Notes: generated by a model from the letters alone, not told the origin. Positions 3,342 to 64,000 are shown, counted from the first letter of the stretch. The stretch is DNA of 64,000 nucleotides from Macrostomum lignano (GCA_002269645.1 NIVC01000112.1:454520-518519); one strand, 5' to 3'. Made by a program: numbers and translations.

Positions 3342-5860
<2,519 letters not shown>

Positions 5861-19300: not shown

Positions 19301-19833
19301 AGCCTTGACATCTTAGCAATTCCCCTCAACAGCCTTGACATCTTAGCAATTCCCCTCAACAGCCTTGACATCTTAGCAATTCCCCTCAACAGCCTTGACA
19401 TCTTAGCAATTCCCCTCAACAGCCTTGACATCTTAGCAATTCCCCTCAACAGCCTTGACATCTTAGCAATTCCCCTCAACAGCCTTGACATCTTAGCAAT
19501 TCCCCTCAACAGCCTTGACATCTTAGCGATTCCCCTCAACAGCCTTGACATCTTAGCGATTCCCCTCAACAGCCTTGACATCTTAGCGATTCCCCTCAAC
19601 AGCCTTGACATCTTAGCAATTCCCCTCAACAGCCTTGAAATCTTAGCAATTCCCCTCAACAGCCTTGACATCTTAGCGATTCCCCTCAACAGCCTTGACA
19701 TCTTAGCAATTCCCCTCAACAGCCTTGACATCTTAGCGATTCCCCTCAACAGCCTTGACATCTTAGCGATTCCCCTCAACAGCCTTGACATCTTAGCGAT
19801 TCCCCTCAACAGCCTTGACATCCTAGCAATTCC
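16343..19833. repeat. 30-bp minisatellite (gacatcttagcaattcccctcaacagcctt)
   Basis: About 115 highly homogeneous copies; degenerate units trail to ~19985. Confidence 0.97.
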
Positions 19834-33751: not shown

Positions 33752-34184
33752 AAAATGAGATTTCTAGCATAAAAGAGCCCGTGTATGAATTTCTTAGAAA
33801 AACAAGCAATTTTTGCCCGCGTAAATTTTGTTCTTGTGTGTTTTAAGTTCAGGCATGAATTATGAATTCAAACTATACAAAAATAGTTGGGTTTCTTGTC
33901 TCATTTTCTATTGTTGTATTCGTTCTCTGTACAGGCAAATTCGATTTATTTTTGTTACCGTTTCTACGAGTGTGTACGATTACTATTTGTGTAATTTTTG
34001 CACCTTATGTTGTAAAAATATTTGCTTTTGGCTAATTTGACTACTTACCAGCTACACGTATCAGTAGCACTGTAAGGAAATGCTTTTCTGAAATTTTATT
34101 TTTGTTTAATTTAACTGTCGTAACTAGAAGTTCTGATCACATTGGCCCCTGTACGATCGAGTATCTTTGATCCTAATCGCACGT

Positions 34185-37100: not shown

Positions 37101-37283
37101 ACAAATCTGCATCCCTGATCCCCATCATCACAAATCTGCATCCCTGATCCCCATCATCACAAATCTGCATCCCTGATCCCCATCATCACACATCTGCATC
37201 CCTGATCCCCATCATCACAAATCTGCATCCCTGATCCCCATCATCACACATCTGCATCCCTGATCCCCAGCATCACAGGTCTG
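34185..37283. repeat. 29-bp minisatellite (ctgcatccctgatccccatcatcacacat)
   Basis: About 105 direct copies. Confidence 0.97.
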
Positions 37284-39929: not shown

Positions 39930-41782
39930 TGTTTAGCGTCAACTGGACCATAGACAATAATTTTCATGACAAACAAAACTTTAGCGTCAACTGGACCATA
40001 GACAATAATTTTCATGACAAACAAAACTTTAGCGTCAACTGGACCATAGACAATAATTTTCATGACAAACAAAACTTTAGCGTCAACTGGACCATAGACA
40101 ATAATTTTCATGACAAACAAAACTTTAGCGTCAACTGGACCATAGACAATAATTTTCATGACAAACAAAACTTTAGCGTCAACTGGACCATAGACAATAA
40201 TTTTCATGACAAACGAAACTTTAGCGTCAACTGGACCATAGACAATAATTTTCATGACAAACAAAACTTTAGCGTCAACTGGACCATAGACAATAATTTT
40301 CATGACAAACGAAACTTCAGCGTCAACTGGACCATAGACAATAATTTTCATGACAAACAAAACTTTAGCGTCAACTGGACCATAGACAATAATTTTCATG
40401 ACAAACAAAACTTTAGCGTCAACTGGACCATAGACAATAATTTTCATGACAAACAAAACTTCAGCGACAACTGGACCATAGACAATAATTTTCATGACAA
40501 ACAAAACTTTAGCGACAACTGGACCATAGACAATAATTTTCATGACAAACGAAACTTTAGCGACAACTGGACCATAGACAATAATTTTCATGACAAACAA
40601 AACTTTAGCGACAACTGGACCATAGACAATAATTTTCATGACAAACGAAACTTCAGCGTCAACTGGACCATAGACAATAATTTTCATGACAAACAAAACT
40701 TTAGCGTCAACTGGACCATAGACAATAATTTTCATGACAAACAAAACTTTAGCGTCAACTGGACCATAGACAATAATTTTCATGACAAACAAAACTTTAG
40801 CGACAACTGGACCATAGACAATAATTTTCATGACAAACGAAACTTTAGCGACAACTGGACCATAGACAATAATTTTCATGACAAACAAAACTTTAGCGTC
40901 AACTGGACCATAGACAATAATTTTCATGACAAACAAAACTTTAGCGACAACTGGACCATAGACAATAATTTTCATGACAAACAAAACTTTAGCGTCAACT
41001 GGACCATAGACAATAATTTTCATGACAAACAAAACTTTAGCGTCAACTGGACCATAGACAATAATTTTCATGACAAACAAAACTTTAGCGTCAACTGGAC
41101 CATAGACAATAATTTTCATGACAAACGAAACTTTAGCGTCAACTGGACCATAGACAATAATTTTCATGACAAACAAAACTTTAGCGTCAACTGGACCATA
41201 GACAATAATTTTCATGACAAACGAAACTTCAGCGTCAACTGGACCATAGACAATAATTTTCATGACAAACAAAACTTTAGCGACAACTGGACCATAGACA
41301 ATAATTTTCATGACAAACAAAACTTTAGCGTCAACTGGACCATAGACAATAATTTTCATGACAAACAAAACTTTAGCGACAACTGGACCATAGACAATAA
41401 TTTTCATGACAAACGAAACTTTAGCGTCAACTGGACCATAGACAATAATTTTCATGACAAACGAAACTTCAGCGTCAACTGGACCATAGACAATAATTTT
41501 CATGACAAACGAAACTTCAGCGTCAACTGGACCATAGACAATAATTTTCATGACAAACAAAACTTTAGCGACAACTGGACCATAGACAATAATTTTCATG
41601 ACAAACAAAACTTTAGCGTCAACTGGACCATAGACAATAATTTTCATGACAAACAAAACTTCAGCGTAAACTGGACCATAGACAATAATTTTCATGACAA
41701 ACAAAACTTTAGCGTCAACTGGACCATAGACAATAATTTTTATCACAAACGAAACTTTAGCGTCAACTGGACCATAGACAAT
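39930..41782. repeat. 48-bp minisatellite (tttagcgtcaactggaccatagacaataattttcatgacaaacaaaac)
   Basis: About 38 highly homogeneous copies. Confidence 0.97.
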
Positions 41783-43431: not shown

Positions 43432-44442
43432 ATGAGCAACTCAAGTAACAGCACTTCTTTACCACTGGACGGTCTCGAGGACGCGGACAGAGACCCCACT
43501 CCCCTGGCCCTGGACGTGTTTTTTCTAGTGCTTGTAATCACAGTTGGCGTCTGCGGAAACTTGCTCACAATCCTGTCTGTCACGCGCTTCAAACAGCTGA
43601 AGTCGGCCACCAACTTCCTGGTGGTGAACATCGGCCTGGCCGATCTCCTTGTGTGCTCCTATTTTGTGCCAACCATTCTGGCCAATCGAATCGGAGAGAC
43701 AAACATCTTTCACAAAAGTGTTTGCCAGCTGAATGCTTTCTTGCTGTTCTCAGCCAGTGGCGTCTCCAACTTCAGCTTCACGTTGATTGCCGTTGCTCGG
43801 AACCTGTGCGTTCTGCACAAAGTCGTGTACCAGAGGTACTTCACCAACGCTAGGGTGATTGGCTACTGCTTGGCCTGCTGGCTGGTCTGGCTTTCTGTTA
43901 GCGGACTCTTCTGGGGTTTAAAAGGCTTTGGCTACATCCGGGAAGTGTACATCTGTTTCTATTACGACGACGAGTCGTTCTTCGCGTTGAGCTTCTTGTT
44001 GACCTTGCTGGGCGTAGCGTTTCCGTCGCTTCTTGCTGCTGGCTGCTACATCAGTCTGTTTTTCAAACTGTTCCGTATTCGCAAAGAAGCCGAGGCTTCG
44101 CTGCAAACTGATGCAACCAGTTTCAGCAAGGAGTGGAAGGCTCTGGTCCCAGTGCTGACCGCCTTCATTGTGTTTAACCTGTGCTGGGGTCCCTACAGCA
44201 TCCACGTGTACATTGACAGGTTTGTAGCTCCCGTGGGCAGAATTCCGCACAAGCTGATCATCTGGCTTGCCGTGTTCAACTCAACCCTGAACCCGATCAT
44301 CTACGGCCTGTTGAATCCGCAGTTCCGTCGCAGCTACTCCAAAATCGCTCGGCGCGCCCTGTGCGTCTTTAAGTCGTCGGCGGTGCATCCGTCATTGGAT
44401 GAACCCAACAGCAGATCGAATGCTGCCGCCGCTCAGCCGTGA
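43432..44442 (+). CDS. Class A (rhodopsin-like) GPCR, melatonin-receptor-like orphan, 336 aa, intronless
   Basis: Seven hydrophobic segments with GN (TM1), LAD (TM2), Cys at the start of TM3, W (TM4), CWGP (TM6) and NPIIYGLLNPQFRRSY (TM7/H8). N-terminal NSS and NST sequons. The YGLLN..FR..Y tail resembles melatonin receptors. Confidence 0.9.
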   Translation: MSNSSNSTSLPLDGLEDADRDPTPLALDVFFLVLVITVGVCGNLLTILSVTRFKQLKSATNFLVVNIGLADLLVCSYFVPTILANRIGETNIFHKSVCQLNAFLLFSASGVSNFSFTLIAVARNLCVLHKVVYQRYFTNARVIGYCLACWLVWLSVSGLFWGLKGFGYIREVYICFYYDDESFFALSFLLTLLGVAFPSLLAAGCYISLFFKLFRIRKEAEASLQTDATSFSKEWKALVPVLTAFIVFNLCWGPYSIHVYIDRFVAPVGRIPHKLIIWLAVFNSTLNPIIYGLLNPQFRRSYSKIARRALCVFKSSAVHPSLDEPNSRSNAAAAQP

Positions 44443-45395: not shown

Positions 45396-46956
45396 AAGCC
45401 GTGGTCACAGCGTGCGCTGCCGTTGAATCTGGCACAAAACAGAATGAGGTGGAAAGAGAATTAAAGAACGATCGAATGCATTTGCATGTAGGCTAGGCTA
45501 AGCAGGATTAAGGCAGGACAGACTGACTGTAGGACATCCCCATTGCTAATGCTTTCAAATCATTCCTGCCTTCTAATATTCGTCAGCAAAATGTTTTCAG
45601 AAAATCAGTTTACAATCCTTAAATCGCTTGAGTCCCCGGATGAATTAAAATCCATTTAAATTGATTAGACTGTGAGAAATGCAATAGATAAAAGCAGTGT
45701 TGACGAAAGCACGTCTGCAAATATTCTGCTGGAACAGCTGCTCCGCTGTCATTTAAGTCTGACGCGTAGGCCTGCAAATGCTCGACCCGTATTTTTTAAT
45801 TTCAACTCCCGTTCGTTTAGGTGCCTGGGATAAACAAATTTAAACAGAGACTTGGTCAGTAGTAGTCGGGCCAGTCGTCCAAAACAAATCGTGGACAACT
45901 GACGTGGAAAAAAGCTGCAGACATTGAATCATGCGATATTCGCTGCCATTAAAAAAACTTTTTCAATGTTTTGCACCAAATAGCGTTGAATATCTCTCTT
46001 TTTGAACTCAAATATTCATTTTAACAGTCTTTTGTCAGAGATCTAAGAGGTTAATTCCCAAGTTTATCAAGCTATTTTCTGAGAAATGCTTCCGAAGACT
46101 ACGGAATCATTTTTTCAGTTATTATAATCTACATGTATTTTTTCAGAAAAATAGCGAAATTCTTTTTGAAAACACTAATAGGCCTAGGTATTGTATTTCG
46201 CGTCTTACCAATCCACTGTACTCGCAGCATAATTTCAAATTTCATTTCTAGAAACTTGCGATCAGCCTTGTACAAGCACAATACGCTCGTAGTGATAGTT
46301 GCTCCATTTTGAAATTTTGAGTAGTGAAATATTGTCAAGTTAGTGCTAAAATGGAAGACATCCCAGCTATCTACAGCCATAATTCGAACTATTGTCGAAG
46401 AGAGTCGAGGAATCGGCTACATGTAGAGACATGATGTTGGAATGTCTCGACCTTTCTAGTCCAAAAGGTCAGACTAGTTAAGGTCCGGAGATCTGCTTTG
46501 GGCTCTTTGGACAATCCAAGCCTTCATGCAAATTCTTGGCGATTAACTTGGGCGCAGATTGCAGTCTGCTTGTTTGCCGAAAGCAGAAAACGTGGCACGC
46601 ATCATTAAAAACCGCACCCGTTGTGCGTGACCGACCTTATTATTTTAGCCCAGAGTTCGGGTTGGAGCTTGTGCAAACAAGCGCTGACATTTTCGGTTGA
46701 TGCTAAAATAAATTTAGCATCCAGCAAGCTCACTGCGGCTCGGTGCATTCAATGAGCCAGATGATTAGCTCCATCTATCCGAGCAGAAATCCGCCCGACG
46801 GTGCGAAAAAGTCTATTGGTAAAATTCGTTTGCATTTTTATGCAAACACACGCAGGTCAGACCGCACACAGACTCTCAGAGACAGAGGCGTTCCATTGAA
46901 TTCTTCACTCGCTGATGGGTCTCAAGCTCGCAAGCAAATGAGCCGCCGTGTTTGCG

Positions 46957-47014
46957 CACGTGGCGCTGCTGATCAACCAGAAAACGTGAATTGACCGAAC
47001 CGGTTTTCTATAAG
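46957..47014 (+). promoter_or_regulatory. Promoter module of precursor gene A: CACGTG, GAAAACGTGA and TATA-like TCTATAAGTAAG
   Basis: Motifs at 46957, 46980 and 47009; same order upstream of gene B. Confidence 0.55.
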
Positions 47015-47105
47015 TAAGCGATGAATTTCTCCGCGAATAGGGCAGCAATCTTTTTGATACCTGGTATCTTTTTTGAAAGCAAATTTTCGCAGCATCTGCA
47101 ACACG

Positions 47106-47552
47106 ATGAAGCTGCAGCTGCTGTGCCTGAGCCTTCTGGTGCTCGGCCTGGCGGTCTTCTGCGTGGCTGCCGAGGAGCAGCCGGCGAAGCCTGCGGATGT
47201 CGAGGCCGAGTCCGACGAGCCCGAAGCCCTCGAAAACGCCCTGATGGAGCTGGAGTCGCCCAGCAGCGACGCTCTCGAGTCTGAATCAAGTGAGGTGAGC
47301 CCTGTCGAGCAGAAGTACCGATTCCGGAGACGGCGCTACTACAGGCGCTACAGGCGAGCTCTCAGGCGCTACTACAGGCGCTACTACAGGCGCAGATACT
47401 ACAGGGCCAGGCGCTACTATAGGCGCCACTACAGGCGCTACAGGCGCTACTACAGGCGCAGATACTACAGGTCCAGGCGCTACTACAGGCGGAGGTACTA
47501 CAGGCGTAGGTACTACAGGCGCAGGTACTACAGGCGCAGGTACTATGGCTAA
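47106..47552 (+). CDS. Secreted Arg/Tyr-rich prepropeptide A (putative antimicrobial-peptide-like precursor), 148 aa
   Basis: Signal peptide MKLQLLCLSLLVLGLAVFCVAA; 48-aa acidic propiece ending PVEQK; 78-aa tail with 43 Arg and 28 Tyr ending RRRYYG*. Confidence 0.88.
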   Translation: MKLQLLCLSLLVLGLAVFCVAAEEQPAKPADVEAESDEPEALENALMELESPSSDALESESSEVSPVEQKYRFRRRRYYRRYRRALRRYYRRYYRRRYYRARRYYRRHYRRYRRYYRRRYYRSRRYYRRRYYRRRYYRRRYYRRRYYG

Positions 47553-48329
47553 AAATTGGATTAACGGCCCGAAGAAATCAACACAGAAAGAAACTCTACT
47601 TAACATCTTGATGAACTCTGACTAATTACTTAGCATATTGATTTTGTTATCAGCTTTACCCACCACAAATTTTCCATTGAACTGTCTATCTTTCTAACTA
47701 GACAACTATATTGACCGCTTAACACGTGTAATTCTCTTTCTTTCAACCAGCTCCAATTGCTCAATCCATTTTTACTCACGGATCTCAGATTTCAAGTTAA
47801 GCAAGACGCTCAAGGCGATCTTTACCAGTTTACAAGTACTAACAAATATTTCAAATATTTCTGTCTTTTAACATCTGAAATAAATAGACTGCGTATCGAA
47901 ACTGTAAGTTTACAGTTCAATATTAAAGAGCTCCCTGCTTATCTACAAATTTCCAAAAAACTCGTCGTTTGAAGTTGAGTTCGTTCTAAGCCAAGATGCG
48001 ATTAACTGCATGTTAAGGCTCACTGTGAACTCGGTGGACTACTTAAAAGTAGTCTAAATGCGTGCAAATCGCTGCAAAATGTAGCGTTTTATCCGAGTTG
48101 CACACACAAGTTTATCAAGTCTAGTATTGCATGAAATTCTCCCAGAGACCGGCAAGAAAGCAATCGAAGTTCCTGTAAAATTTTGGCTGTTCCTGTCCCT
48201 GTAGTGTCTTTCCTCGGCCGAATTCTGTATCGAATATGTCCATGCTGAAATCCCTTTTAACGCACTATGAACAAAAAGCAAATCTGTGTAGTGAACACAA
48301 CTGTATTCTAAGGCGGTGGACCCGCTAGG

Positions 48330-48560
48330 TGGTCGCAGTCCTGCGCGCTTGTAGAGGGCTGCGTTGGAGACGGCTCCGGGTAGCTGATGCTGAAAACTGC
48401 TCACTGCAGGGCCGAGTGTGCTGCGTCCACCTTTCGGCGTTGTCGGTCAAAAAGGTTTCGACTATACTGCCTCAGCTGGGACGCCACCGGCTGTTGCCAC
48501 CTTCTCAGAGAGCTCGCGCTGAAAAAACTGATATCTGACACCGCCCTCTTGAGAACTTTA
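48330..48560 (-). mobile_element. Degenerate RTE-like non-LTR retrotransposon fragment
   Basis: Frameshifted RRKVDAAHSAL..AVFSISY-..VSNAALYKRAGLRPPS on the minus strand. Confidence 0.5.
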
Positions 48561-48854
48561 CTCCGTTTCCCCGGCGGTGTGCCCTGTTGTTGTTGTTGTT
48601 GTCCTTGACAAACTTACGAGTGCACCTCAGTAAAACATGTACTTGACTTCGTTTGGAATTCGTGAGACCTAGCTGCACAACAATATCGAGCCGAATTGAA
48701 ATTAAGAGCGCTTATTTTGGCGACAGCAATCCTAGGAGTGATTTCCTGGAACAAGCGTCAATTAAAAATGGCGATTTTGTGACGTCCAGTGGTTATAACC
48801 CAGCTATGGGTGTTTTGAGTGTTGGTAACTAGATTTACTTGATGTCATAGATCT

Positions 48855-49110
48855 GTACACCAAATATCTGTAAATCACGGATCTGTACGTCCCGGATCTG
48901 TAAATCACGGATCTGTACGTCACGGATCTGTAAATCATGGATCTGTACGTCAGAAATCTGCGCGTCACGGATCTGTACGTCACGGATCTGTAAATCATGG
49001 ATCTGTACGTCACGGATCTGTAAATCATGGATCTGTACGTCACGGATCTGTAAATCATGGATCTGTACGTCACGGATCTGTAAATCATGGATCTGTACGT
49101 CAGGAATCTG
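48855..49110. repeat. 30-bp tandem repeat built from two 15-bp subunits (ggatctgtacgtcacggatctgtaaatcat)
   Basis: About 8 copies. Confidence 0.9.
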
Positions 49111-50109
49111 AATGATATGCTCGGATCTATACGGATCTCTATAAAATTTCCAAGCGGGATCACTGCTCCCTATTCTCATTTACCGCAAAATGGATTATGT
49201 GATTAAAACTTCAAATTTAAAGGTAAAGCGCCTAGTCATTCGCTAGTTCAAGTTTTCAAGCATTCAAGGATTCAAATGGCGTCAGGATATTCAACGGCAT
49301 TCCGGTCAGAATTATTTGTTTTAATTTCATTCCAGCAACTCTCTGTCATGCAAAGCATGCACATCCAATTTCTTTAATTTCTACTTGCTATTGCTACGAG
49401 CTAATTTTAGCATTTGCGAAAAACACCAGTAAAGTGTCGGTCTTGTCAGGGGGCAGACAGAACTGCAAAAAAGTTTGATTTAGTGCGTTGAAACTTTTAA
49501 TACGTTCTCACAGCTTCTATATATAGTACCATTCAAGACGCCTGAACTAGAATTAAATTAAATTGTAGCTCTTATTACGAATGCAGGGCTAATATTTTTA
49601 AATAGTATCAGGACAACAGGTGTGATCAGAAAACGGATGTACCGCACATAGTAGCACTGTCATTACAAAGCGGATTCAATCGAGCTTCAAGGATATCTTC
49701 AAGGAGTTTAGAGATTTTTTTATCTGTCCAATTAGGTATGCAAAAAAACTTGCGATTACAGGATTTTTAAATGTAGCAATGTGGCAGTTTCGGTAATTTA
49801 TTTTGTAGCTTCGGCCAGATCGTCCTTCCGTGATCGAACGCGAACCTAATTATATTACTTTTACTTGACTTGATCTAAGTAGAACGAGGGACAGCGCGCA
49901 TATAACTTCAAGCGTCAATGGCTGATACAATTTACAGTGTACTTCATCCTAGAAGTTATTCTTAAGTTATCGGTGTATCGCTTTCAAAATTCATTTTTTG
50001 TTTCATTTATAATTACGAGCGTATGTATAATTTAGTCTTTAGGTCAGGGCTTAGGTAATGATTGGCTGTGATACTTATCAATGGGTAGGATTAGGAAACC
50101 CGAAAAATA

Positions 50110-50455
50110 GGGGTGGAGCAGACATGGGCAGCCAATCAGGCTTGGGTGTGATAAATGGGGCAGAAAGCATGGGCGGTTGGAGGCAGCTAGGCGGAGGGGT
50201 GGAGCAGACATGGGCAGCCAATCAGGCTTGGGTGTGATAAATGGGGCAGAAAGAATGGGGGCGGTTGGAGGCAGCTAGGCGGAGGGGTGGAGCAGACATG
50301 GGCAGCCAATCAGGCTTGGGTGTGATAAATAGGGCAGAAAGAATGGGGCGGTTGGAGGCAGCTAGGCGGAGGGGTGGAGCAGACATGGGCAACCAATCAG
50401 GCTTGGGTGTGATAAATGGGGCAGAAAGAATGGGGGCGGTTGAAGGCAGCTAGGC
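50110..50455. repeat. ~87-bp tandem repeat, each unit carrying CCAAT and GGGCGG motifs
   Basis: About 4 copies starting at 50110, 50196, 50284 and 50371. Confidence 0.92.
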
Positions 50456-51062
50456 GATGGGGGTTGATGCAGACGGTTTGCGGAAGGTGGTTGGCCCAAA
50501 AACATGGGCCCAGGGGGGGGGGGAATGCACTGCCGCGCCCTATCTGACCGAGAGCTAGGGAACTGCTCAAGTTAATAAGGGTTTCTAATCAAGACTTCGA
50601 TCAAGGACTGTGTGATTCTGGATCTTGGACACGAGTCAGCAGGGTGCAGAGATTCGTCAGTCTCGCTACTGCAGGCATCACTGATGCTGGTGTGGCGTGA
50701 GTGACGTGGACTGCGAAATTCATTGCATACAAAAATTCATCCGCACTACTTATCCGCCTGATGAGTCCTTGGTTTTATTCATTAAAACTTTTTAAATATA
50801 TATTTTTTTAAGTCCCAAACTCAAGGAGGTAAGAAATTGCTTTTAATGCTTATTTAACGAAATATCTTCAACGTACAACGCACAATAGCTTGGAGCAGAG
50901 GTTTCAATGTGTTGAGGTGGAGATGAGTAAGAAGGTGAAAATACAGACACGAGTACAAGTATAAATAGAGAGCCAATTTTGCCACTCGGGTGACTATAAC
51001 TAACAATAGAATTGGCCTGTGCAAGCCTGCAACACTCAAAACACCGCACACAGCAGTTATTC

Positions 51063-52391
51063 ATGGGTCAGCTGTACAGCAGTTCAAATATTCGCGCCAG
51101 CGATCCCGTTGAAGTTCTTCTTTTGACAGCCGGAGTCGGGGCGGAATCCGCTGCAGCCTCAGCCTCCTCGGTGCTGCATCGGGTGGTGAAAAAGTTGAAA
51201 TGCGACTACGGTGTGACCAAGAGCTGGTATCGAGTTCGAGCCAAGTCAATCGATCAGCTGACAGCTGATGAGTCCTGTCACTGCCTGTTCCTGCAGACAG
51301 ATCGGCCGGTTTCAGCCGGGGAGCAGTCGGTGCTGGCCGAGCTCCTGGAGAATCGGCCCTCCTGTCAGCTGGTGTGGCTGGCATTTGAAGCGGAGCAGCA
51401 GAGACAGCAGCACCGGCAGATGCCCGCATGGCTGCGAACCCAGGCCAGATGGTTCAGGCTGGGCGACCTGGGCGGCATTGTTGAGTGCATCAGTCACGTG
51501 GTCCGCACTAGAGTCCTGTGTGAGTCATCAGTTCATTACAATGTGGTCCTGGTAGCCAGGAGTGCTAGTGGGTTATGCCACCTGTTAGAATAGGATTATG
51601 TCACCTGTTAGACTAGGATTATGTCACATGTTAGACTGGGGTTATGCCACCTGTTAGACTGGGATTATGTCACCTGTTAGACTAGGATTATGTCACATGT
51701 TAGACTGGGGTTATGCCACCTGTTAGACTGGGATTATGTCACCTGTTAGACTAGGATTATGTCACATGTTAGACTAGGATTATGTCACATGTTAGACTAG
51801 AATTATGTCACCTGTTAGACTAGGATTGTCACCTGTTAGACTAGGATTATGTCACCTGTTAGACTAGAATTATGTCACCTGTTAGACTAGAATTGTGTCA
51901 CCTGTTAGACTAGGATTGTGTCACCTGTTAGACTAGAATTGTGTCACCTGTTAGACTAGGATTGTGTCACCTGTTAGACTAGGATTGTGTCACCTGTTAG
52001 ACTAGAATTGTGTCACCTGTTAGACTAGGATTGTGTCACCTGTTAGACTAGAATTGTGTCACCTGTTAGACTAGGATTATGTCACCTGTTAGACTAGGAT
52101 TATGTCACCTGTTAGACTAGGATTATGTCACCTGTTAGACTAGAATTATGTCACCTGTTAGACTAGAATTATGTCACCTGTTAGACTAGGATTGTCACCT
52201 GTTAGACTAGAATTATGTCACCTGTTAGACTGAAGAAGTGCCACCAATTTTACAGTGAATGCAATTAAAGCGGCTTTCGAGATAACAACACCGTACTCAA
52301 ACACCTCCACATTTCAGACGAATACGAGCTGGTGAAATGGACTCAGTCGTTCCGATCGAAGCGAAATTTTTGCAAGGAATTAGATTTCTAA
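51063..52391 (+). CDS. Uncharacterised ~177-aa protein with a predicted N-myristoylation site and possible TIR-like beta/alpha fold; join(51063..51519,52318..52391), second exon tentative
   Basis: GC-rich ORF starting MGQLYSS. Donor T|GTGAGT at 51520. Acceptor atttcAG at 52316-52317 gives an in-frame YEYELVKW..ELDF*. Upstream noncoding exon donor GTGAGT near 50697. Confidence 0.65.
51580..52232. repeat. 23-bp minisatellite (gttagactaggattatgtcacct), intronic
   Basis: About 28 direct copies. Confidence 0.95.
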
Positions 52392-52731
52392 GTCCTATAA
52401 AATTGTTTCAGCCATTACACTAGTTTTCATATTTTTCGCGCGTATTTCAAATGCGTATCTGAGAGGCTAATGTAATTTCGAGACAAGAGTTAATACTATT
52501 AAAGCCAGAGGTTTTCTTAATTTCCTAATAAATGAACTTTCAAACTCAGTCATTCTAATATGTGCAAAGCCCTGTTATATCGCAAAGAATAAAAAAAAGA
52601 AAACGTGCCGTAGCATCAATATTACTGATGCTCAAAATAAAGTAATATAAATGCATTGAAAGATTTCTTCTCCAGGAGAAACAGATGCAGGAACATGCAG
52701 GACTGACAGACAGACAGACAGACATATGAAA

Positions 52732-53657
52732 CTTAGACACCCCTCCTATCTATGCATCTGTTCAATTGATTTTTATAAAAATTTACACAAACATGGACCT
52801 ATATGTAATGAATTCAGTGCTTAAGTTTCAGCTTAATCGGGTTGACAGAGCAAAAGCAATCGATCTTTTACTGACGAACCTACGAAATTAGCAATACGAT
52901 TTTAAACTCAATAAAATGTAAAAGTTACCGAGCAAACAGTTCAAACAAAAAACAGATCACCAATCGTGAAATTCTTCAGAAGAATCTTCATTCTGTCGAA
53001 TGCACTTGTCATATCGCATCGGCAACTCCTCAGTCCTCAATCCACGCCGACCACATATCCCTAGGTGTCGCTCTGATCAGCCCCTCAGCAGCCGTTTGCA
53101 GCTCAGTTTGCAGCTTGACGAACCGCTGGCCTCTTGGACTCATCCTGCGTGCTGAATCAGCTCTTGAACTCGTCTCCCAGACCTGAAACTGCCGCCCTTT
53201 GTTGCAAGCAGACTTCGTATTGGCGATTCTTTTGCTCTTAAACCACCTGAGGCTGGTTCCGCGTCTCAGCATCTGAATCTCTGCGCACTCTGGCTATGTT
53301 GCTATGCTGCTTACTGCTTTGTTTTTTTGCTCTTTAATCTATGGCTTAACCTTCACAGCTTGTATTAGTATTCAATTAATTAAGGTATTTTTCAATACCC
53401 AGCGAAAGCAGTGATATTTTTCTGAATAATTTTTATAAAAATGAGCTGCAATGTCACCACTGGAGTCCAGTTTCGATTCTCTTCAAAAATCGTATTGCTA
53501 ATTTCGTAGGTTCGTCAGTAAATGATCGATTGCTTTTGTTCTGTCAACCTGATTAAGCTGAAACTTTAGCACTGAATTCATTACATATTGGTCTATGTTT
53601 CTGCATTTTTTCATCAAACTCAATCAAACAGATGCAGAGATATGAGGGGTGTCTAAG
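52732..53657. mobile_element. Non-autonomous TIR element, ~925 bp, with long TIRs
   Basis: CTTAGACACCCCTC.. and ..GAGGGGTGTCTAAG ends; ~170-200 bp of inverted homology; consistent with a TA duplication inside a CTTAAG target. Confidence 0.8.
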
Positions 53658-53730
53658 AACTTTTTGGACGCACCAAGGTACTTGAAGCTGCAGGTTTAGA
53701 AAATGATTGAAAAAGTACAATTAAGACAAG

Positions 53731-54232
53731 GAATGCAGTACAATTCTGGGCCTTCAGCAGCAAAGCGTTGCAGGACTGGATGATCGGGACATTCGTACGT
53801 CTCAATCTTTTTCTACTCTTACCAGGAGCTTGCATGGCCTCCCAGTGCCAAAGTAGGAAAGTCTTCGTTCTTGAAATGGAGCTCACACTGGTACTTGATT
53901 CATGTCGGTGTGAATACTCGATCTGTTTTAACGATGTCAAGACAAATAGTCAGCCTTTGTTCATTCTTGACAGGATATGCAAATAATGACACGCCATCTC
54001 AATGGTTTAAAGTTCAGCTTCTTTTACTCGTATTACTTGTAGTCAGTCGTCTTGTCTTTTAAGTATGAATCAGAACTGCAACTTGCACCGAATTTACAGC
54101 AATGGAATCTACAGTAGCCAATCGGTGCGAACGAGGGCCTCGAGAAATCCATGGTTTTATTCATCCATGGACCGAACCCACTGGCAATGGCACGAGCTAC
54201 ATGCAGATCGAGCCTATGGTTTTGAAGGTAGC
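53731..54232 (+). other. Possible spliced or decayed F5/8 type C (discoidin)-like coding remnants
   Basis: Discontinuous frames give CSTILGL..LDDRDIRTSQS, GYANNDTPSQWFKVQL and YSSMDRTHWQW..YGFEG, in the expected order; no continuous ORF. Confidence 0.25.
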
Positions 54233-55836
54233 CAATGGAGAGAGTTCACGGCTTGCAAGTGTAACAATGCCTAGACCACGAGTGCGCGTTAGCGCGTGTA
54301 TTTTGTCGTTTAGACTTTTATTTTTAAAAAAAATTCTCAAAGAAGTTAACCCAATTGTTGTCATGTTTTTATTCGTACTTTAAGTAGTGTTTTAAGCGTC
54401 ACTTTTTATTTTCTAATTGGACCCTAAAATAATCTTCAACATATTTTGTCTCAGTAAACAGTGAATATATCGCGATGCTGTAAACTCTTCACTCAAGTTA
54501 ATGGAGTGGGTTGATTATCTGAATTGCTCAGGAGGCTTAATTCAAAGCGTCCGTGTTATCAAATGCTTGAGCAACCGAACGAATACGGTGTCTCACTATT
54601 TGATTTCTACATTGTAGAGGTACAGAATATCTGGTGAACTCAAAGATTATAAACCGAAGATGTGTCACTCTTCGATCGCAGATAGAGAGTTTGCGAGATT
54701 GATTAAAAGATTCGCGACCATAGGTAAAAAAAGCTATACCAGATAAGAAATTTAATCTAGAGAGTCTGACATAAGCGCAAGTCTACGGTATGGCGGAGAG
54801 CCATGGCAGATGAGCGACCAATTCAATCATTCGAATAGCAGATTAGTTACAAGACTAAACTGATTCTCAAAGCGTTTGCAACGAATCATTTAAGGAGCAT
54901 GGGTATCGGAGCTCTTAGTTAGCACCTATGGTCACATCCGGAATTCAACAAGAGTGCAATGCCCCATCTCTGCTAATCACTCTCTGTCAATGGCAGATTG
55001 TGCAATACAATGATCGACTTGAACACACAATGATCGAATTCCGACTGCGAAGTCTGACTGACTTATCGACAAATGAATGCGAACTGCAGTACATGTAAAA
55101 AGAAGAGCTTAAAAATGGATTCAAGGAATAACTGACTCGTTAGCTGCTCTTTATCAGTAAGTGTTGCTTTCAGTATCAGCAGATAAAGGGTGCGTTCGAA
55201 TAGCTTAGACTGGCTTCGACTGCTGAGAAGAGTTGTCAGGTCTTGTTTGAAGTGCAGTGCAATACACCGAAAGGTTCTCAATCAAGCATTTTGTCACAAA
55301 GACACAAATTCTTGGAGCAGCACTCATCTTAGTCTGGCAGTCCTTGTTGAGTTCTTCACTGACTCGTCAATAACATGCTAAATCTTTACTGGGCCCATCT
55401 GTAAGTTACCAGGGTAAACCGTAAGAAACTGGCAGCATCAAAATTCATTGGAGCAGGTGTCCTAGCTTGCGCAAACTCACCAAGTGCGGTGTGAACAGAA
55501 AATGAGAAATGAGTGGAGAGAGACAGGAAAATGATGCAGTAGCAAAACGTTTTTTGCTGTCTTACCCAAACAGAGAAAAATAGAAGTGAGGGCAAGGCTT
55601 GATTGCAATCTCCATTATTCTCAGCATTGTGTGCCTTTCTTATTTTTTTATCAAGAGAATTAAGATACTGAGATGGAGCAGAAAAGCTTCAAGCAATTGC
55701 TGCGTGCTGGAGTACTGTTCGATGCTGCCACTGCTTTTCCAGAAATTTCTGTCAGCTCGCTGCACGGGTGTGTCTGCGCCCATAGGGCGTGTCAGCTGCA
55801 GACGCGTGTGCTCAAAAAAACTAAATCTTCACGTTT

Positions 55837-55910
55837 CACGTGTTAAGGGGTCCAGCTGGCAATAATAAAGCGAAAACGTGACCGTCCCCATCAAAGTGGG
55901 TCTATAAATA
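55837..55910 (+). promoter_or_regulatory. Promoter module of precursor gene B: CACGTG, GAAAACGTGA and TATAAATA
   Basis: Motifs at 55837, 55872 and 55903; ATG at 56005. Confidence 0.65.
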
Positions 55911-56004
55911 AGGCTTGTGTGAAGCGCCCAGGAGCTCCCAAGTCGGGTAGCATCTTTGCGAACCGAGTTTGTTGTCTTTGATTTCTAAAGCAGCAGCAGC
56001 AGCA

Positions 56005-56307
56005 ATGAAGTGGCAGTTCGCCCTTGGTCTCCTCCTGTGCGTGGCGCTGGCGGTCTACGCCAGCCCAGCTGAGCAAGTCGACGACGACAACCTGGACGAG
56101 GCTTCCAACGACGCCCTGGCCGACATGGCTGAGCCGGAGTTGGCCGAATCGGACAGCGACCTGGCTCCCGAGGAGAAGTTGTTCTTACGTCGTCGTAGGC
56201 GTCACCACTATTTTGTGTACCACAGCCGCAGGCGCTATTACCGCAGGCGCTTTTACCGGCGCTATTACCGTCGCCACCACGTCCACTTCGTCGCTTACCA
56301 CGGTTAA
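56005..56307 (+). CDS. Secreted Arg/His/Tyr-rich prepropeptide B (putative antimicrobial-peptide-like precursor), 100 aa
   Basis: Signal peptide MKWQFALGLLLCVALAVYA; 39-aa acidic propiece ending PEEK; 42-aa tail LFLRRRRRHHYFVYHSRRRYYRRRFYRRYYRRHHVHFVAYHG*. Confidence 0.88.
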   Translation: MKWQFALGLLLCVALAVYASPAEQVDDDNLDEASNDALADMAEPELAESDSDLAPEEKLFLRRRRRHHYFVYHSRRRYYRRRFYRRYYRRHHVHFVAYHG

Positions 56308-57297
56308 TCGAAAACCCGTGCGAGAAAAACATTTTGGACATAAATTAAACCACTTTTAATACACCAGTAGTTCGGAAATTCGCTCTGTAATAAGAACTTC
56401 AGTAGAACATACAATTTTTTTCTCTTCTCTCGTTACTTGCTTGATGAATACTTTAGTTTAGTGTTTTCCTCGTTTCAAATCTTACTTGCTTGTTAGAAAA
56501 GAACCTGATTGAATGAATTATATCTTCGAAAGATGAGAAAGAACGCGCGAAATAAACAATACCCGACTAGGCAAAGCTTTAGCTCGCTTTGAACCATCAA
56601 AATGGTTGCCATCTATGCCTAAATTTCACGCTACATGTGGGGAAAAAATACTCGATTCTTTAAGACGAACAAATGCGACTGTAATAGAAAAGACCTAGAT
56701 CTAGGTACGAAGAAAATGAAGCTATTGTCATACGAGCAATATTTAAACTGAGTAAGCGGAGGAATACATCTCTGCTAGTTTTTTTCGTCTGCGCTCGTCC
56801 TTCTGAGTTCGACGTCTAAGTGGAGCCGGACCAGTCTGCCAAGTGCAGAGATTCATTGTTAAAATTGCTACCCAGATTCATTGCATGAGTTTGAGAGACT
56901 GCTTTACATTCTCACGCGCAAATTGAGCACAATTGGCAGCCGAGGTCTCCAACACGAGTTGGGTGGGTCCAAGCAGTGCTTGAGTCGTAAAGTATTCTAA
57001 TAAGCAGCTCATCTTTCTACAACTTCTACTAAGTATTATTACGAATATTTGCTTAGCACCTATTTATGAGTCACGAGTCTGTCTCAGATTAACAAACTTT
57101 AGTGCCTACTTTTTTCATTCCATTCTCGCACTAGTAACAGCAGTAAATTAAATGAAAAGGAATCTAAAAATAAATCTAAGCACCGTGATTTTTTCATCAG
57201 TCTGAATTTTATGTTTCTACACAGAGCGCTTAACGCGCATCGGAGTCTGCATGCTCGCAACTTGAGTTTGTTAACCTTGTACCCTTCCACAATTCCG

Positions 57298-59320
<2,023 letters not shown>

Positions 59321-59632
59321 TTACTCAATGAATTCAACAAAGTTTTAATTAACTTTTTTCTTTATATTATAGAAGCATTTGAAAGCGCATTTTAAATCAT
59401 TTGCACTCCGACAGCAGCTGCAAACGGTCGTGCGCCCTGCATACAAAATATGCCCCGATCAATTTGACTACGAAGTAGAAAAAAGGACACGTTCTATTAA
59501 ACTGAAGTTAGACACCGTGCCGCAGTACAGCGAGTCAAACCATTACCATATTCCTCTACTTGGCCCTAAGCCCCTCAGATGTTAACATAGCATGAATAAA
59601 GCCCCGAATTCATTTATTATAACGCTGCAGGA

Positions 59633-59813
59633 CACGTGCATCGGTCCAGATGACAGCAATACAACGAAAACGTGACCGTCACCATGACCGGCCGAGAGCG
59701 CCCAGCAGGCCGGGGCCCCAAGTTGAGCAAAATCTGCGAACCGATTTTGCTGTCGTCTTTGATTTTAAAAGCAACCGCAGCAGCAGCAGCTATGAAGTGG
59801 CAGTTCGCCCTGG
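59633..59813 (+). pseudogene. 5' remnant of a gene B paralog (promoter, leader and first 7 codons MKWQFAL)
   Basis: Aligns with 55837-56025 (CACGTG, GAAAACGTGACCGTC, leader, (GCA)n, ATGAAGTGGCAGTTCGCCCT); lacks the TATA box; homology stops after codon 7. Confidence 0.8.
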
Positions 59814-60879
59814 AAGTTTGAATCCAAGTATCGTTGGATTTTTTAAAGTAGAGCCTACCTTATTAGTTTCTATGACCCACTTGATTAATTTTTTTCGGAA
59901 TAAAAGCAGGTCATCGAGTGTCACTAAGGTGTTATTTAATGAAAGCTGACTCACTTTTCAATTTGTTTTCGGACTTACTGATATACAAACTCCATGTTAA
60001 AAAATGTATGTTAAAGTCAAGTGCGCCATACGAGCTCCTATTCACCTAACATTTACCTACAAAATAATCAATTACTATATTTTAAGTGACCAAATTACTG
60101 AATTCAAGCCTAAACACTACTATTAAATACGAACGTACGATTATCTTGCTGTTCTGTTATAAGACTGATAAAAACTTTTCTTTCAAAGACACTCTTAAAG
60201 AGTTTAAGTCAATTGCTGGCATGCTCTACTCCTACTTTGAGTAGTGTGTTACGAGTAAGCGTTAGTTTTTAGTTTCTAAAATGAGTTCTAAAAAGACTCT
60301 GCGTCATCTTTTTGCCTAAGTAAGCAGTAAATATTTATAGGAAAAACGCTTTTCTGTAAAATCTAAATTCAAGTTAATGAAGTGGGGCGATCATCTGTTG
60401 CTCGGGCTTTATTTAAAGCGTCTGCGTTATCAAATACTATATTTGAGTAATCGAACGAAGACGCGTTAGGTGGATGCACATTACACCAAAGGCTACCATT
60501 AACCGTATGAATTGAATGAGAGTTTTCAATATTTACTGCACACTTACCAAAATACTCGTAAATTGAAAAAGGTGTAGAGGCTTTCACTTTGATTAGGACA
60601 TTTTGAGTTTGAGATTCGAAAAAAAGGAAAGAGTGAACTGCTGCTTAAAGCATTTGCGATGAATCATTTATTGAGCAAGTCTCGGAGCTCTTAACAGCTA
60701 AGACAGTTAGTTGGTCACATCCGAAATTCAACAACAGTTCAATTCTCCACCTCTGGTACGTAATCACGCTCTACATGCCAATGGCACATTCGAATACGAA
60801 AGGCACAAGGCGCAATTAGAATATGCGTAGAAGTGTATGCCAGATGCAATCTAAACTTGAGTTGCAGTCGGCAGGGTCT

Positions 60880-61330
60880 TTTTTGGCATGAAGCTTAAAA
60901 AAATAAAAAGCAACGAAAACAATAAAAAGACTCCAGTAATTTTTAGACAAGTCGATCGTAAATTATCGATTAAAATTATCGATCGTAACCGCCAGAGTAT
61001 GAAGTTGTCTACTCTTGAGGCATTGTACATTAAACAAGCTAAAGCCCACCATGAACATCCAACTTGGTGGTAGAGGGGCGAGTGTCCATCTAAGGGTGTT
61101 CTGACCCCATGCGCTTGCCTCTTATTTAGGGCCATCTAACTCTGTTACCCATACTTGCATCATTTTGGCTTATAGACTTAAGAATTTACCATCTCTCTGC
61201 ATCTATATTTTGCCTGAAGATGCCGATTATTCGGCGAAACATGTCGCACGAAGATTAATAAATTGTAATTTTGTATTATTAAAGAAAAAATGTGAATGTT
61301 CGTGTTTGCTTTCGTTTTCTTGGCTTTCCT
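60880..61330 (+). mobile_element. 3' fragment of a Penelope-like element (GIY-YIG C-terminus plus terminal repeat region)
   Basis: KIIDRNRQSMKLSTLEALYIKQAK-(frameshift)-KPTMNIQLG, followed by a hammerhead motif and AATAAA. Confidence 0.7.
61211..61248 (+). ncRNA. Minimal type I hammerhead ribozyme of the Penelope type
   Basis: tgc-CTGAAGA-t-GCCGA(ttat)TCGGC-GAAAC-at-GTC-gca: conserved core, 5-bp stem II, palindromic short stem III (ACATGT), GUC cleavage triplet, 3-bp stem I. Confidence 0.8.
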
Positions 61331-61447
61331 CAAACGATGTACCTTACCTTGACTCTAATTGTAAATCCATTAAGTTGAGAAACCGGTTTTTCATTAACCC
61401 GAAATTCCCGAAACTAGGTCGAGGGCACGTCTTTTGGGGCTCTGTCT

Positions 61448-61627
61448 GAAGACCTCGAAAAGTTGTCCAACACCCTGGCCGACCTGGCCGAGCCGGACGC
61501 GGCCGAGCCCGACCTGGCCGAGTCCGAGTTGGCCGAGTCCGACGAGAACACGGATCTGCAAGAGAAGTTCCGGATTCGGTTCCGGTTCCGCAAGCATCGC
61601 TACTTCCGCCGGCGCTCGCAGTTCTAG
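61448..61627 (+). pseudogene. 3' remnant of another precursor paralog (acidic propiece plus cationic peptide FRIRFRFRKHRYFRRRSQF), no signal peptide
   Basis: EDLEKLSNTLADLAEPDAAEPDLAESELAESDENTDLQEK aligns with the B propiece (ALADMAEPELAESD); in-frame stop upstream at 61415-61417. Confidence 0.75.
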
Positions 61628-61792
61628 TTGAATATTAGCTACCGAAAGTGTCTGGCAGTCGTTCTTGCTTTTGTCGTTTGTGGGTTTAAAATCGAACAAA
61701 TAACCATCCAAATTGTTTGAAGCAGAGCAAGCTAAGTAAGTCTGAAATGGAGGAGACTAATCTTTTGGTGACGGGCGGGCAAGCCTCGTTGT

Positions 61793-62040
61793 TCCATAGA
61801 TTGATTCGATAGATTCCATGATTGTTCCATAGATTGATTCGATAGATTCCATGATTGTTCCATAGATTGATTCGATAGATTCCATGATTGTTCCATAGAT
61901 TGATTCGATAGATTCCATGATTGTTCTATAGATTGATTCAATAGATTCCATGATTGTTCTATAGATTGATTCGATAGATTCCATGATTGTTCCATAGATT
62001 GATTCGATAGATTCCATGATTGTTCCATAGATTGATTTAC
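61793..62040. repeat. 33-bp tandem repeat (ccatagattgattcgatagattccatgattgtt)
   Basis: About 7.5 direct copies. Confidence 0.95.
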
Positions 62041-63157
62041 ATGCCTATTTTGCATTAAAAACATTAAGACTTTAGTAAATATACATACATAAACATCAAA
62101 TTTTTGGTATAGAGATTTAGTATATAGTGATTTTTAGATTGTAAGAATCATAGTTCTAGCATGCGAGCATACTTTGGTAGCTCATAAAACATACCGGATA
62201 TTTATCGGTCGCTTTGATTGATTATGACTATGACTTATAAAGTGGGTAAAACACAAGATCGTAGTAAGTTAAAAAACTGTAAAATTTAATAACTTGAAAG
62301 CAAGTTCGTCTACATATCTCAAGTTCGGACCATCAGTCCAATGCCACGAAATATTCATATCAAACAATATAACAAGCCAGTCACCCAACCCCTCTCCGCT
62401 CTATAACCTGCATGGCAGGAAAGGAAAAAACCAGTGTTTTTCCACGAACCGCTCTGAGCCACATTGAAACAGTGAATAGAAACGCTTCATCACTAAAATT
62501 CTGCAGTGAGGCTTGAGTTGCATTGCCAAACGATTTCGTTGTTTTTTTTACAAAAAAGCGTGCAGCAACGAAATGGGGCGTTGCCGCAAGCAAAACGGTG
62601 CCGCACGCTTCTGTGGCAAAAACAAATTTACCAACGAAATCGTTAGTCAGTTAGGTAATTTTTGCTACGTCAACGCAACCGCAAATTGACGTCAAAATTG
62701 GGGGTAGGCGTCTTTCAAATTGTAGGCTTCATAGCTTCAGTTTGTGTTGCCTGACGACGTCCGAGGTTATAGCCTCTGATCTCAATGCGTCGATCCAAAA
62801 CTGAGAGGCGGTATCAAACTTTGGAAAATGGTGCAGAATGACATTTTCATCCAGTTTTGGAGAAAATATATGCCAGTTGCAACTCTCGGGATTTAATCTC
62901 ATACCGACCTCAAACCGATAGAATATCTTATACATATCTACTCTTTCGCTCGTGTTTTGAAATAAAGGGGAAGACCTACAAGCACGATTCGAGAGTCGAT
63001 TCGTCTACAATAAAAAGGAAAGAAAGGGGCGAAGGCCGAAAATTGTCTATGGCAATCATCAACCAATGAAAAGGCACGGGGGGGAACCGGATGCAAAAGA
63101 GTCAAAAACGAAAATAGCCAGAGCCAGAATAGCAATCCATTCTATTCATTCATCCAT

Positions 63158-63304
63158 GAGTCTTTTGCACAAAGTTACGAACTCGTAAAGTTGCGATCAA
63201 TCTTACGCATAGCTAACTTGCGAGCCCTTCGAGCAACCCGTAAGTGTAGCTTACCCAACTTACGTCTATGGTCGATCGTAAGTTGCTTTCGAGAAAGACC
63301 CCCC
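63158..63304. mobile_element. Possible small Harbinger-like MITE remnant
   Basis: Right end TAAGTTGCTTTCGAGAAAGACCCCC with a degenerate inverted left end. Confidence 0.3.
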
Positions 63305-63758
63305 AGTGCTCAGCATCTCTCAAGGTCTTCCTTTTTCGGCCATGTTTAATTATTTGCGTCGTCCATGCAGACTCTCAGATGGCTGGTGAATATTGATCAG
63401 ATCTATAAAAGAGTGTTTATGCATTGTTTGAATTCATTAACTGATAATAGAAACCACCTCCTCATACCAACTAAAATAAATTCAACAAAACTACAGCCAA
63501 GTAAAGTTTCGTGTTCGTGCATAACCAACCCACTTAATTTAACGCAGGGGTATCCCTATAATAACTCAGGAGATTATAAGACGAATACAAGTTGTATTAT
63601 AAATCAACTACTTTAGGACCGACTGAAACGACTAACAATGCTTTTTGAAATAAAAAACAACGTATATTACCAGTACAGACGTAACTATATGCATAACAAT
63701 GCTAAAATGTCATCTGTTGGGTTGAGTATGAATCTTTTGACGTGTATCTCAATAGCAA

Positions 63759-64000
63759 GGGAGTTGTAACCTAGTACTTAGAGCGTCGGAATCACGACTT
63801 GAAGGTCAGGGGTTCGATTCCTGATCTAGCTGGAACAATTAGTGTCCAAAAACCACTAGGAAAACTTCCTTGTTAGTGTCCTTGAGCAAGACACTTAACT
63901 CTCCATTGCTTCAGTTCACCCAGCTGTAAAATGGGTGCCAGTATTAGTAATTAATCCCAGTCCTTGGACTGAACAGCCGTACGCAGCCTTCAGATGCGCC
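63759..64000 (+). mobile_element. tRNA-derived SINE with a CORE-like central domain, running to the window end
   Basis: A-box-like CTAGTACTTAGAGCG; B box GGTTCGATTCC at 63811-63821; GTGTCCTTGAGCAAGACACTTAACTCTCC..CTTCAGTT..CTGTAAAATGGG at ~63876-63935 closely resembles the MIR/CORE consensus. Confidence 0.8.

Follow-up and report, generated by a model that had tools for sequence, protein, structure and literature searches.

What are the secreted, extremely arginine-rich peptides encoded by a small cluster of genes in Macrostomum lignano, a free-living marine flatworm, and do the genes that encode them belong together? The cluster lies in a 64,000-nucleotide (nt) stretch of DNA (GCA_002269645.1 NIVC01000112.1:454520-518519), referred to here as the window, in which positions are counted from the first letter; the genes, remnants, and promoter elements described below are on the plus strand. 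A preliminary description of this DNA had reported two intact intronless genes, A and B, together with broken 5′ and 3′ remnants of such genes, and had proposed that they form a host-defense peptide family. We conclude from the sequence, with moderate confidence, that the locus encodes taxon-restricted secreted prepropeptides of the host-defense (antimicrobial or toxin-like) kind, and we place gene B and both remnants in a family, defined in this analysis, that we call MKWQ.

Gene A (BOX15_Mlig006956g2; positions 47106 to 47552) is an uninterrupted open reading frame (ORF) of 148 amino acids (aa) in a single exon. It consists of a 22-aa signal (MKLQLLCLSLLVLGLAVFCVAA; 47106-47171), a 48-aa acidic propiece with a net charge of -14 that ends in PVEQK (47172-47315), and a 78-aa tail ending in YYG (47316-47549), followed by the stop codon (47550-47552). 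The tail has a net charge of +43 and contains 43 Arg and 28 Tyr residues (55% and 36%, respectively). It is a tandem array with units of 12, 15, 33, and 45 nt, mostly (R)RRYY blocks in which the codons are AGG or CGC and TAC; these repeat units and codon blocks suggest growth by replication slippage, and the pattern points to slippage of short codon repeats as the way in which the Arg/Tyr tails of both A and B were lengthened. Gene B (56005-56307) is likewise a single-exon, uninterrupted ORF, of 100 aa, with a 19-aa signal (56005-56061), a 39-aa propiece with a net charge of -14 that ends in PEEK (56062-56178), a 42-aa Arg/Tyr/His/Phe tail with a net charge of +15 and a YHG end (56179-56304), and a stop codon at 56305-56307. 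An AATAAA hexamer, a candidate poly(A) signal, is found 250 to 330 nt past the stop codon of each gene (47879-47884 for A and 56551-56556 for B). In an AlphaFold model of gene B, the tail formed one helix (predicted local distance difference test [pLDDT] values of 72 to 82) and the propiece was disordered; given the moderate overall confidence of the model (pLDDT of 66), secondary structure alone was taken from it. All of the reported features were present, and the signal, the acidic propiece, the conserved junction (PVEQK, PEEK, and, in the 3′ remnant, LQEK), the cationic tail, and the terminal Gly of A and B can be read in the sequence.

A and B also have a promoter element in common. The gene A promoter (46957-47016) contains CACGTG (46957-46962), the 9-mer GAAAACGTG (46980-46988), and the TATA box TATAAGTA (47009-47016), and the gene B promoter (55837-55910) has the same order of elements, with CACGTG at 55837-55842, GAAAACGTG at 55872-55880, and the TATA box TATAAATA at 55903-55910. 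The 5′ remnant retains CACGTG (59633-59638) and GAAAACGTG (59666-59674). In all three, CACGTG stands 23 to 35 nt upstream of GAAAACGTG, and the distance from GAAAACGTG to the ATG is 126 nt for A, 133 nt for B, and 126 nt for the 5′ remnant; in A and B, the TATA box follows about 30 nt downstream of GAAAACGTG and about 100 nt before the ATG. The 9-mer occurs five times in the window, always on the plus strand, compared with an expectation of 0.2, and the chance of finding it in any given 300-nt upstream stretch is about 5e-4. One of the two extra sites is at 46586-46594. The other, at 52599-52607, is followed about 45 nt later by TATAAATG (to 52660), with no family-like ORF after it, and could be what is left of the promoter of a vanished copy or a chance occurrence. 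Elsewhere, GAAAACGTG is also located ahead of the family genes at three loci (P0038, P0041, and P0071) and is present in inverted orientation at the P0002 locus; it was not found upstream at the P0039 locus.

The MKWQ family was delimited with a profile of its signal and propiece (prepro) regions. Run against 1.84 billion representative proteins, such a profile returned three, each of them from M. lignano, and among the 615 ORFs of the window the top three matches to a profile of family prepro regions were gene B (E = 2e-28), the 5′ remnant (0.053), and the 3′ remnant (0.062), the two stubs matching weakly. Further members came from a wider word-based search and from a published table. Together, these sequences make up a Macrostomum-restricted family of at least eight peptide types; profile and word-based searches covering 1.84 and 5.8 billion proteins found no homologs outside Macrostomum, and a Pfam search with all members returned no family at threshold and no match to protamines. 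The predicted mature peptides differ greatly: WFSRWFRITYRRRGGERRYLRSYFRLG for P0002, WRRRRRFRWRKAIRVAGKVAKAVL for P0038 (Mlig024774), WRIKSACKIFRRLLHLARKCYAKKG for P0039 (with a helical hydrophobic moment of 0.77), WLRVRARTDVIWLALTTQLI for P0040, FLRVRLPRVRMPRVRLPRVRLPRLRVRFRWSKK for P0041 (from a genomic contig of run SRR31628392), AILIKKAVYKPNYYKD for P0071, and WRIRFRRIRIRWRRVYRVVRTAYRIYRHLPFPGK for Mlig001477g4. One predicted product is an amphipathic helix, another has the alternating strand pattern FRIRFRFR, and a third is a Pro/Arg repeat. The members are spread over several loci, and some are duplicated locally: genes of the P0038 type form an inverted pair, at positions 5033-5206 (minus strand) and 9312-9485 (plus strand) of locus L007, and Mlig001477g4 is a fused tandem. 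The 127-aa P0038 model in the Mlig_3_7 assembly is an annotation artifact that fuses the antisense of one inverted copy to the other copy; the real ORF has 80 aa.

What holds these sequences together is the prepro region and the junction. The consensus of the MKWQ signal is MKWQ[FL]ALGLLLC.ALA, and the propiece is acidic and often carries an EALEAL motif. Lys occupies the last position before the predicted mature peptide (-1) in 11 of 11 sequences, followed at +1 by W, F, Y, L, or A, and Glu is found at -2 to -4 in 8 of the 11, the exceptions being P0039, P0040, and P0041. A Gly or Gly-Lys C terminus is present in 5 of 11 members (P = 5e-4 against a background of 7%). Taken together, propiece and mature peptide have a net charge between -7 and +5 in every sequence (10/11) except gene A.

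The prepro and mature parts have evolved at different rates. Across the eight types, mean pairwise identity was 74% for the signal but fell to 36% for the propiece and to 19% for the mature peptide. The same tendency was seen among near-identical copies of gene B. The M. lignano assembly holds several near-identical copies of most loci (PMC5730564); positions 46381 to 64000 of the window are 94 to 99% identical to the Mlig_3_7 contig NIVC01000866.1, the DNA surrounding gene A is 100% identical to NIVC01000112.1, and A and B are intact in the other Mlig_3_7 copies of the locus. Copies of gene B elsewhere in that assembly are P0037 (105 aa), P0001 (96 aa), and P0036 (75 aa), and the annotated copies are BOX15_Mlig008283g1 (105 aa), Mlig025063g1 (96 aa), and Mlig022283g1 (75 aa); gene B itself is 92% identical to P0001 and 68% identical to P0002. 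Here, too, one model is an artifact: at L001 10001-10318, the 96-aa model P0001 drops 27 nt of a continuous 105-codon ORF. Among four gene B copies, the 174-nt prepro part had three synonymous changes and no nonsynonymous change, whereas the tail had five nonsynonymous changes and no synonymous change, plus a 15-nt indel; in one copy, the tail was rearranged and ended at an early stop. The difference between the two parts was significant, although the numbers are small (Fisher P = 0.018). The claim that the mature part diverges faster than the prepro part is thus upheld at both levels.

This pattern bears on whether the genes might encode neuropeptide, hormone, or pheromone precursors amidated via the C-terminal Gly, an explanation that we regard as highly improbable. 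The enrichment of Gly or Gly-Lys ends, together with a build of signal, propiece, and one C-terminal peptide, would suit such precursors. However, receptor ligands are conserved, whereas the mature peptides here are 19% identical and differ by indels between near-identical genome copies; lengths of 42 to 78 aa and net charges of +15 to +43 also do not fit, and there are no flanking dibasic sites.

Whether gene A belongs with gene B is less clear. The two genes are on the same strand, 9 kb apart, and have in common their architecture, a Lys-aromatic junction, a terminal Gly, and the promoter element. As clear paralogs, they are unproven. In the signal and propiece, the A-B comparison gave a z score of 1.7, a value equaled in 132 of 2,000 segment-preserving shuffles and so not above composition; gene A scored -0.1 bits against the eight-member family profile, a score reached by 376 of 1,000 segment shuffles; and blastn found no DNA similarity between the two loci outside the Arg/Tyr codon repeats. 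Gene A would therefore be either a very diverged paralog or an unrelated, convergent neighbor under the same regulation. In protein searches, gene A had no eukaryotic relative beyond its near-identical copies and matched, weakly, only bacterial look-alikes (P0003 to P0015, P0020, P0021, P0024, and P0042 to P0057), in which a Tat or Sec signal and a spacer precede a C-terminal (RRYY)n tail and the match is one of composition alone. They come from Alphaproteobacteria (e.g., Mesorhizobium and Methylopila) and cyanobacteria (e.g., Nostoc), and some of the alphaproteobacterial ones are named “protamine-2 (modular protein).” The likeness of these bacterial (RRYY)n proteins to gene A looks like compositional convergence.

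A gene with such a tail might also be a functionless transcribed ORF, made by codon-repeat expansion beside a real family gene. The tandem 12- to 45-nt units of the gene A tail in a genome rich in minisatellites, the lack of homologs outside near-identical copies, and the dead copies at the locus would all be expected if this were so. The conservation of gene A argues otherwise. Its ORF was unbroken in four of four locus copies examined, and its protein was found unchanged on two other Mlig_3_7 contigs; compared with the L001 copy, it differed at 4 of 447 nt and 1 of 148 aa, while the flanks were 93 to 98% identical, a divergence of 2 to 7%. Gene A also has a signal peptide, a TATA box, an AATAAA hexamer, and the family promoter element at a B-like distance from its ATG. 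We therefore consider a functionless ORF very unlikely.

The two remnants show that B-type copies have been duplicated and lost at this locus. The 5′ remnant (59643-59821) keeps the 5′ untranslated region of a B-type copy, with its ATG at 59792 and the TATA box deleted; its reading frame (59792-59821) encodes MKWQFALEV*, in which seven family codons are retained and a stop follows after nine. The 3′ remnant (61448-61627, within an open frame at 61418-61627) is also of B type but has neither ATG nor signal. It encodes 40 residues of propiece (…LADLAEPD…LQEK; 61448-61567), homologous to that of gene B in a shuffle test (z = 3.9), and a 19-aa cationic peptide, FRIRFRFRKHRYFRRRSQF (61568-61624), with a stop at 61625-61627. 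We considered whether the two are halves of a single gene interrupted by an intron or a transposon insertion and rejected this, since their reading frames cannot be connected, the signal and the first part of the propiece are absent, and B-upstream DNA lies between them. Of the 1.6 kb separating the remnants, about 0.45 kb is 70 to 74% identical by blastn to DNA 1.0 to 1.7 kb upstream of B; specifically, the stretch upstream of B at 54323-54999 recurs at 60181-60790, as part of the duplicate unit of the 3′ remnant, from which the promoter and signal region have been lost. Because the DNA between the remnants repeats the region upstream of B, we read them as the stubs of two separate truncated duplicate units. 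The earlier notion of a tandemly duplicating family therefore stands for the B-type copies, which were duplicated locally and then decayed, but not for gene A, whose homology to B could not be demonstrated. Between gene B and the 5′ remnant is a 2-kb (CTA)n array (57298-59319).

As to expression, the Mlig_3_7 gene models were derived from RNA-seq assemblies, with novel transcripts below 0.5 reads per kilobase per million mapped reads dropped (PMC5730564). A and B are annotated among these models, so their transcription is likely, and we regard both as real and probably transcribed genes. Gene ids and sequences had no match in the supplements of PMC5816591, PMC5730564, PMC5977470, and PMC5946080. 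One possible lead concerns a relative: the 501-nt in situ probe RNA815_1838.3, scored “gonads” by Ramm et al. in 2019 (PMC7336406, Additional file 16, Table S10), was mapped to Maclig_37v3@Mlig001477.g4, which has the same number as BOX15_Mlig001477g4, the equivalence of the two id versions not being confirmed. The primers of that probe (GCTACACAACTCAACCAAGAAAGC and ATCAAGGCGACTGAGTGATGG) matched none of the loci compared, all other than that of Mlig001477g4. If the ids are equivalent, a germline-deposited, egg-protecting peptide would fit, as is known for Hydra periculin (PMC12466427).

How, then, might these precursors work? We propose that transcription would start from the TATA promoter under the influence of the upstream CACGTG-GAAAACGTG pair and that the signal peptide would direct the product into the endoplasmic reticulum, as suggested by published SignalP results and a hydrophobic core. 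The acidic propiece, judging from the matching charges, would neutralize the cationic tail during transit or storage. Conservation of the junction Lys suggests that cleavage would occur after it, and the C-terminal Gly, in about half of the members, would be converted to an amide. The freed Arg/aromatic polycation could then bind anionic surfaces of microbes or other cells and damage them. A conserved prepro region, charge-matched halves, a constant junction, frequent terminal Gly, and hypervariable amphipathic cationic products are hallmarks of host-defense and venom peptides, and it is chiefly on this combination that we base our preference for a host-defense function of the family and, by extension, of gene B. 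These features also characterize frog dermaseptins, Hydra arminins, and tunicate clavanins. The antimicrobial or toxin-like reading of the preliminary description is in this respect supported: the genes encode secreted prepropeptides in which an anionic propiece precedes a cationic C-terminal peptide, and the relatives end like classic antimicrobial peptides (AMPs).

Several observations weigh against a host-defense function. AMP predictors favor almost any cationic peptide. A lone Lys does not make a classical convertase site, and the Arg runs could be furin-type targets; indeed, the ProP program predicts cuts inside them (PMC10414684). Only four AMPs in the APD3 database exceed a charge of +20 (PMC10414684); the gene A tail, with +43 over 78 aa, is far outside the range of normal AMPs, and the gene A propiece (-14) cannot neutralize it. 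By shuffles and profile, gene A has no demonstrable sequence relation to the MKWQ family. Finally, the sole expression lead, “gonads,” suggests a reproductive context, subject to the unconfirmed id equivalence noted above.

Because neither the A tail nor the B tail resembles ordinary AMPs and the A propiece cannot neutralize its tail, we kept a material or structural role in consideration for these two genes, as an unlikely candidate. Their tails would then be secreted “sticker” polycations, acting by condensation with polyanions (sulfated mucins, polyphosphate, or nucleic acids) or by cross-linking through 3,4-dihydroxyphenylalanine (DOPA), in settings such as eggshell or egg coat, secretions for cement or adhesion, the packaging of rhabdites or mucus, or ejaculate; the remaining family could still be antimicrobial. 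In favor of such a role are the extreme composition of the tails, with 43 Arg and 28 Tyr in the 78 residues of A and His and Phe added in B, and the “gonads” score of the probe that may correspond to a family member. Arg-Tyr pairing drives coacervation, and mussel foot protein 3 is a small Arg/Tyr-rich DOPA protein. M. lignano adhesion, moreover, depends on charge interactions (PMC6410801). Yet the residues that mark DOPA adhesives and Gly/Tyr eggshell proteins (Gly, Asn, Ser, and Lys) are almost absent from A and B, and the table that lists the family members also contains another M. lignano protein, rich in Gly, Tyr, and His, that is of this type (PMC10414684). The known M. lignano adhesives are giant proteins, and apart from A and B, the members contain little or no Tyr and resemble membrane-active helices. 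The adhesion literature (PMC6410801 and PMC8621496) contained no link to these genes. The stronger version of this idea, in which gene A, and less so B, would encode a new kind of secreted Arg/Tyr polycation rather than an AMP, one that condenses or phase separates with extracellular or granule polyanions, seems to us doubtful. Uses could include egg or sperm coats, rhabdite or mucus secretion, and granule packaging, and the A tail is predicted to be amphipathic if helical. If it were true, bacteria would have reached the same solution independently through their Tat- or Sec-exported (RRYY)n proteins.

Other known precursors are built in a similar way. The linear peptides of spider venoms (latarcins, cupiennins, and oxyopinins) are made from precursors with a signal, an acidic propeptide that mirrors the charge of the mature part, and one linear cationic peptide; they have in common with MKWQ a motif in which Glu stands at -2 to -4 and a basic residue occupies -1, a Gly that frequently serves as amide donor, and diversification by indels (PMC8290080). 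In the spider quadruplet motif, however, the residue at -1 is Arg (PMC8290080), whereas in MKWQ it is Lys in 11 of 11 sequences. The likeness is convergence, not membership: the animals belong to different phyla, and the one Pfam match, of a single member's propiece to the family “Latarcin precursor” (PF10279; E = 0.059), was far below threshold, at 14.1 bits compared with a gathering cutoff of 25. That weak match and the resemblance in build to simple spider precursors would also be consistent with toxins, that is, cytolytic or cell-penetrating peptides directed at prey, predators, or mating partners rather than microbes. M. lignano is a diatom grazer and is not known to have a venom apparatus, and we think such a use quite unlikely; the low score of the Latarcin match and the Lys in place of Arg count against it as well.

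Hydra arminins and periculins offer a second parallel, with a signal, an anionic N-terminal and a cationic C-terminal part, and a taxon-restricted multigene family (PMC12466427). No cnidarian protein was recovered in the profile and word-based searches, however, and periculin is Cys rich, while the C-terminal peptides of arminins are Lys/Arg helices and not Arg/Tyr repeats. The arminin architecture was reportedly described by Augustin et al. in 2009. In the frog dermaseptin superfamily and the precursors of tunicate clavanins and styelins, the signal and acidic spacer are likewise conserved, and the cationic mature peptide that they accompany is hypervariable. In clavanins, an acidic piece ending in …EEEK precedes the mature peptide, which has a Gly for amidation and is followed by an extra anionic C-terminal extension. 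At E values of ≤1, Pfam did not match the MKWQ sequences to the signal-propeptide family of frogs, and frogs cut at Lys-Arg. Protamines resemble A and B in extreme Arg content but are nuclear and lack a signal peptide, which both A and B have; bacterial proteins of the “protamine-2 (modular protein)” type have composition in common with gene A but no related prepro region. Overall, the locus is best filed as a taxon-restricted member of the known class of anionic-propiece/cationic-peptide precursors, with an unusual Arg/Tyr repeat variant.

Some of these genes had been recorded before. Irvine et al. (PLoS Pathog 19:e1011508, 2023; PMC10414684) screened helminth proteomes computationally for AMPs and listed, as flatworm AMP-like peptides (fAMP-LPs), proteins of less than 150 aa that were SignalP positive and for which at least half of 11 AMP predictors were positive. 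In file S5 of that study, gene A is present as entries 518 and 519 (step “Ungrouped”), the gene B copies as group 116 (step “Same genome”), the P0038 type as group 142 (step “Same genome”), and Mlig001477g4 as entry 544 (step “Ungrouped”). A, the B copies, and the relatives are SignalP 4.1 positive in that file, in agreement with the signal peptides predicted for them, and their ProP-derived fragments were positive with 72.7 to 100% of the 11 predictors (PMC10414684). The precursors were cut there at ProP furin-type sites and not at the conserved Lys, the members were put in separate groups and never linked, and they are outside the prioritized and tested peptides; the main text does not mention Macrostomum (PMC10414684). 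Since relatives in other species were lacking, they were dropped before prioritization. Two earlier claims need to be revised in light of this record. The statement that homology-based annotation would miss these genes does not hold, since A, B, and the relatives are annotated genes in Mlig_3_7. The label “undescribed” no longer applies to the genes and their AMP-like classification; it does apply to the family, the junction, the promoter, and the cluster. Our literature search found no paper that discusses these genes, and within the literature searched, this is the first account of the shared prepro family, of the promoter element, and of the clustering of the genes.

The remainder of the window has a varied content. 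Upstream of the gene A promoter, at a distance of 2.7 kb, is an intronless rhodopsin-type G protein-coupled receptor gene (43432-44442, plus strand; Pfam 7tm_1, E = 1e-33). A pair of ORFs without introns, each of about 675 aa, at 6897-8936 (plus strand) and 22730-24745 (minus strand), show 33% mutual identity (E = 3e-106). Their N termini are rich in Cys, neither has a Pfam family, and they probably represent an expanded or transposon-derived gene family. Among three further ORFs (33278-33751, plus strand; 5393-5860, minus strand; and 4136-4672, minus strand), one matches the C-terminal part of Maf1 (E = 2e-24) and the other two encode C2H2 zinc fingers, probably as exons of one gene. Long mini- and microsatellites fill the window (e.g., at 9714-11158, 13596-15861, 16343-19835, 34176-37277, and 39932-41782), and the satellite arrays yield long spurious ORFs on both strands.

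Almost no antimicrobial peptides have been characterized in free-living flatworms (PMC12466427), and homology searches have not found the canonical AMP families in them; this locus provides an entry point. A single signal-plus-propiece profile gathers, within one species, at least eight cationic peptides that differ greatly from one another, on the design principle that is also that of frogs, spiders, and Hydra, and the Arg/Tyr tail of gene A would rank among the most cationic secreted peptides known. The fate of these genes in an earlier screen illustrates that filters demanding cross-species relatives discard fast-evolving, taxon-restricted families. Since transgenesis, RNA interference, and in situ methods are available for M. 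lignano, the promoter element, the processing site, and the function of these peptides are directly testable in the animal itself.

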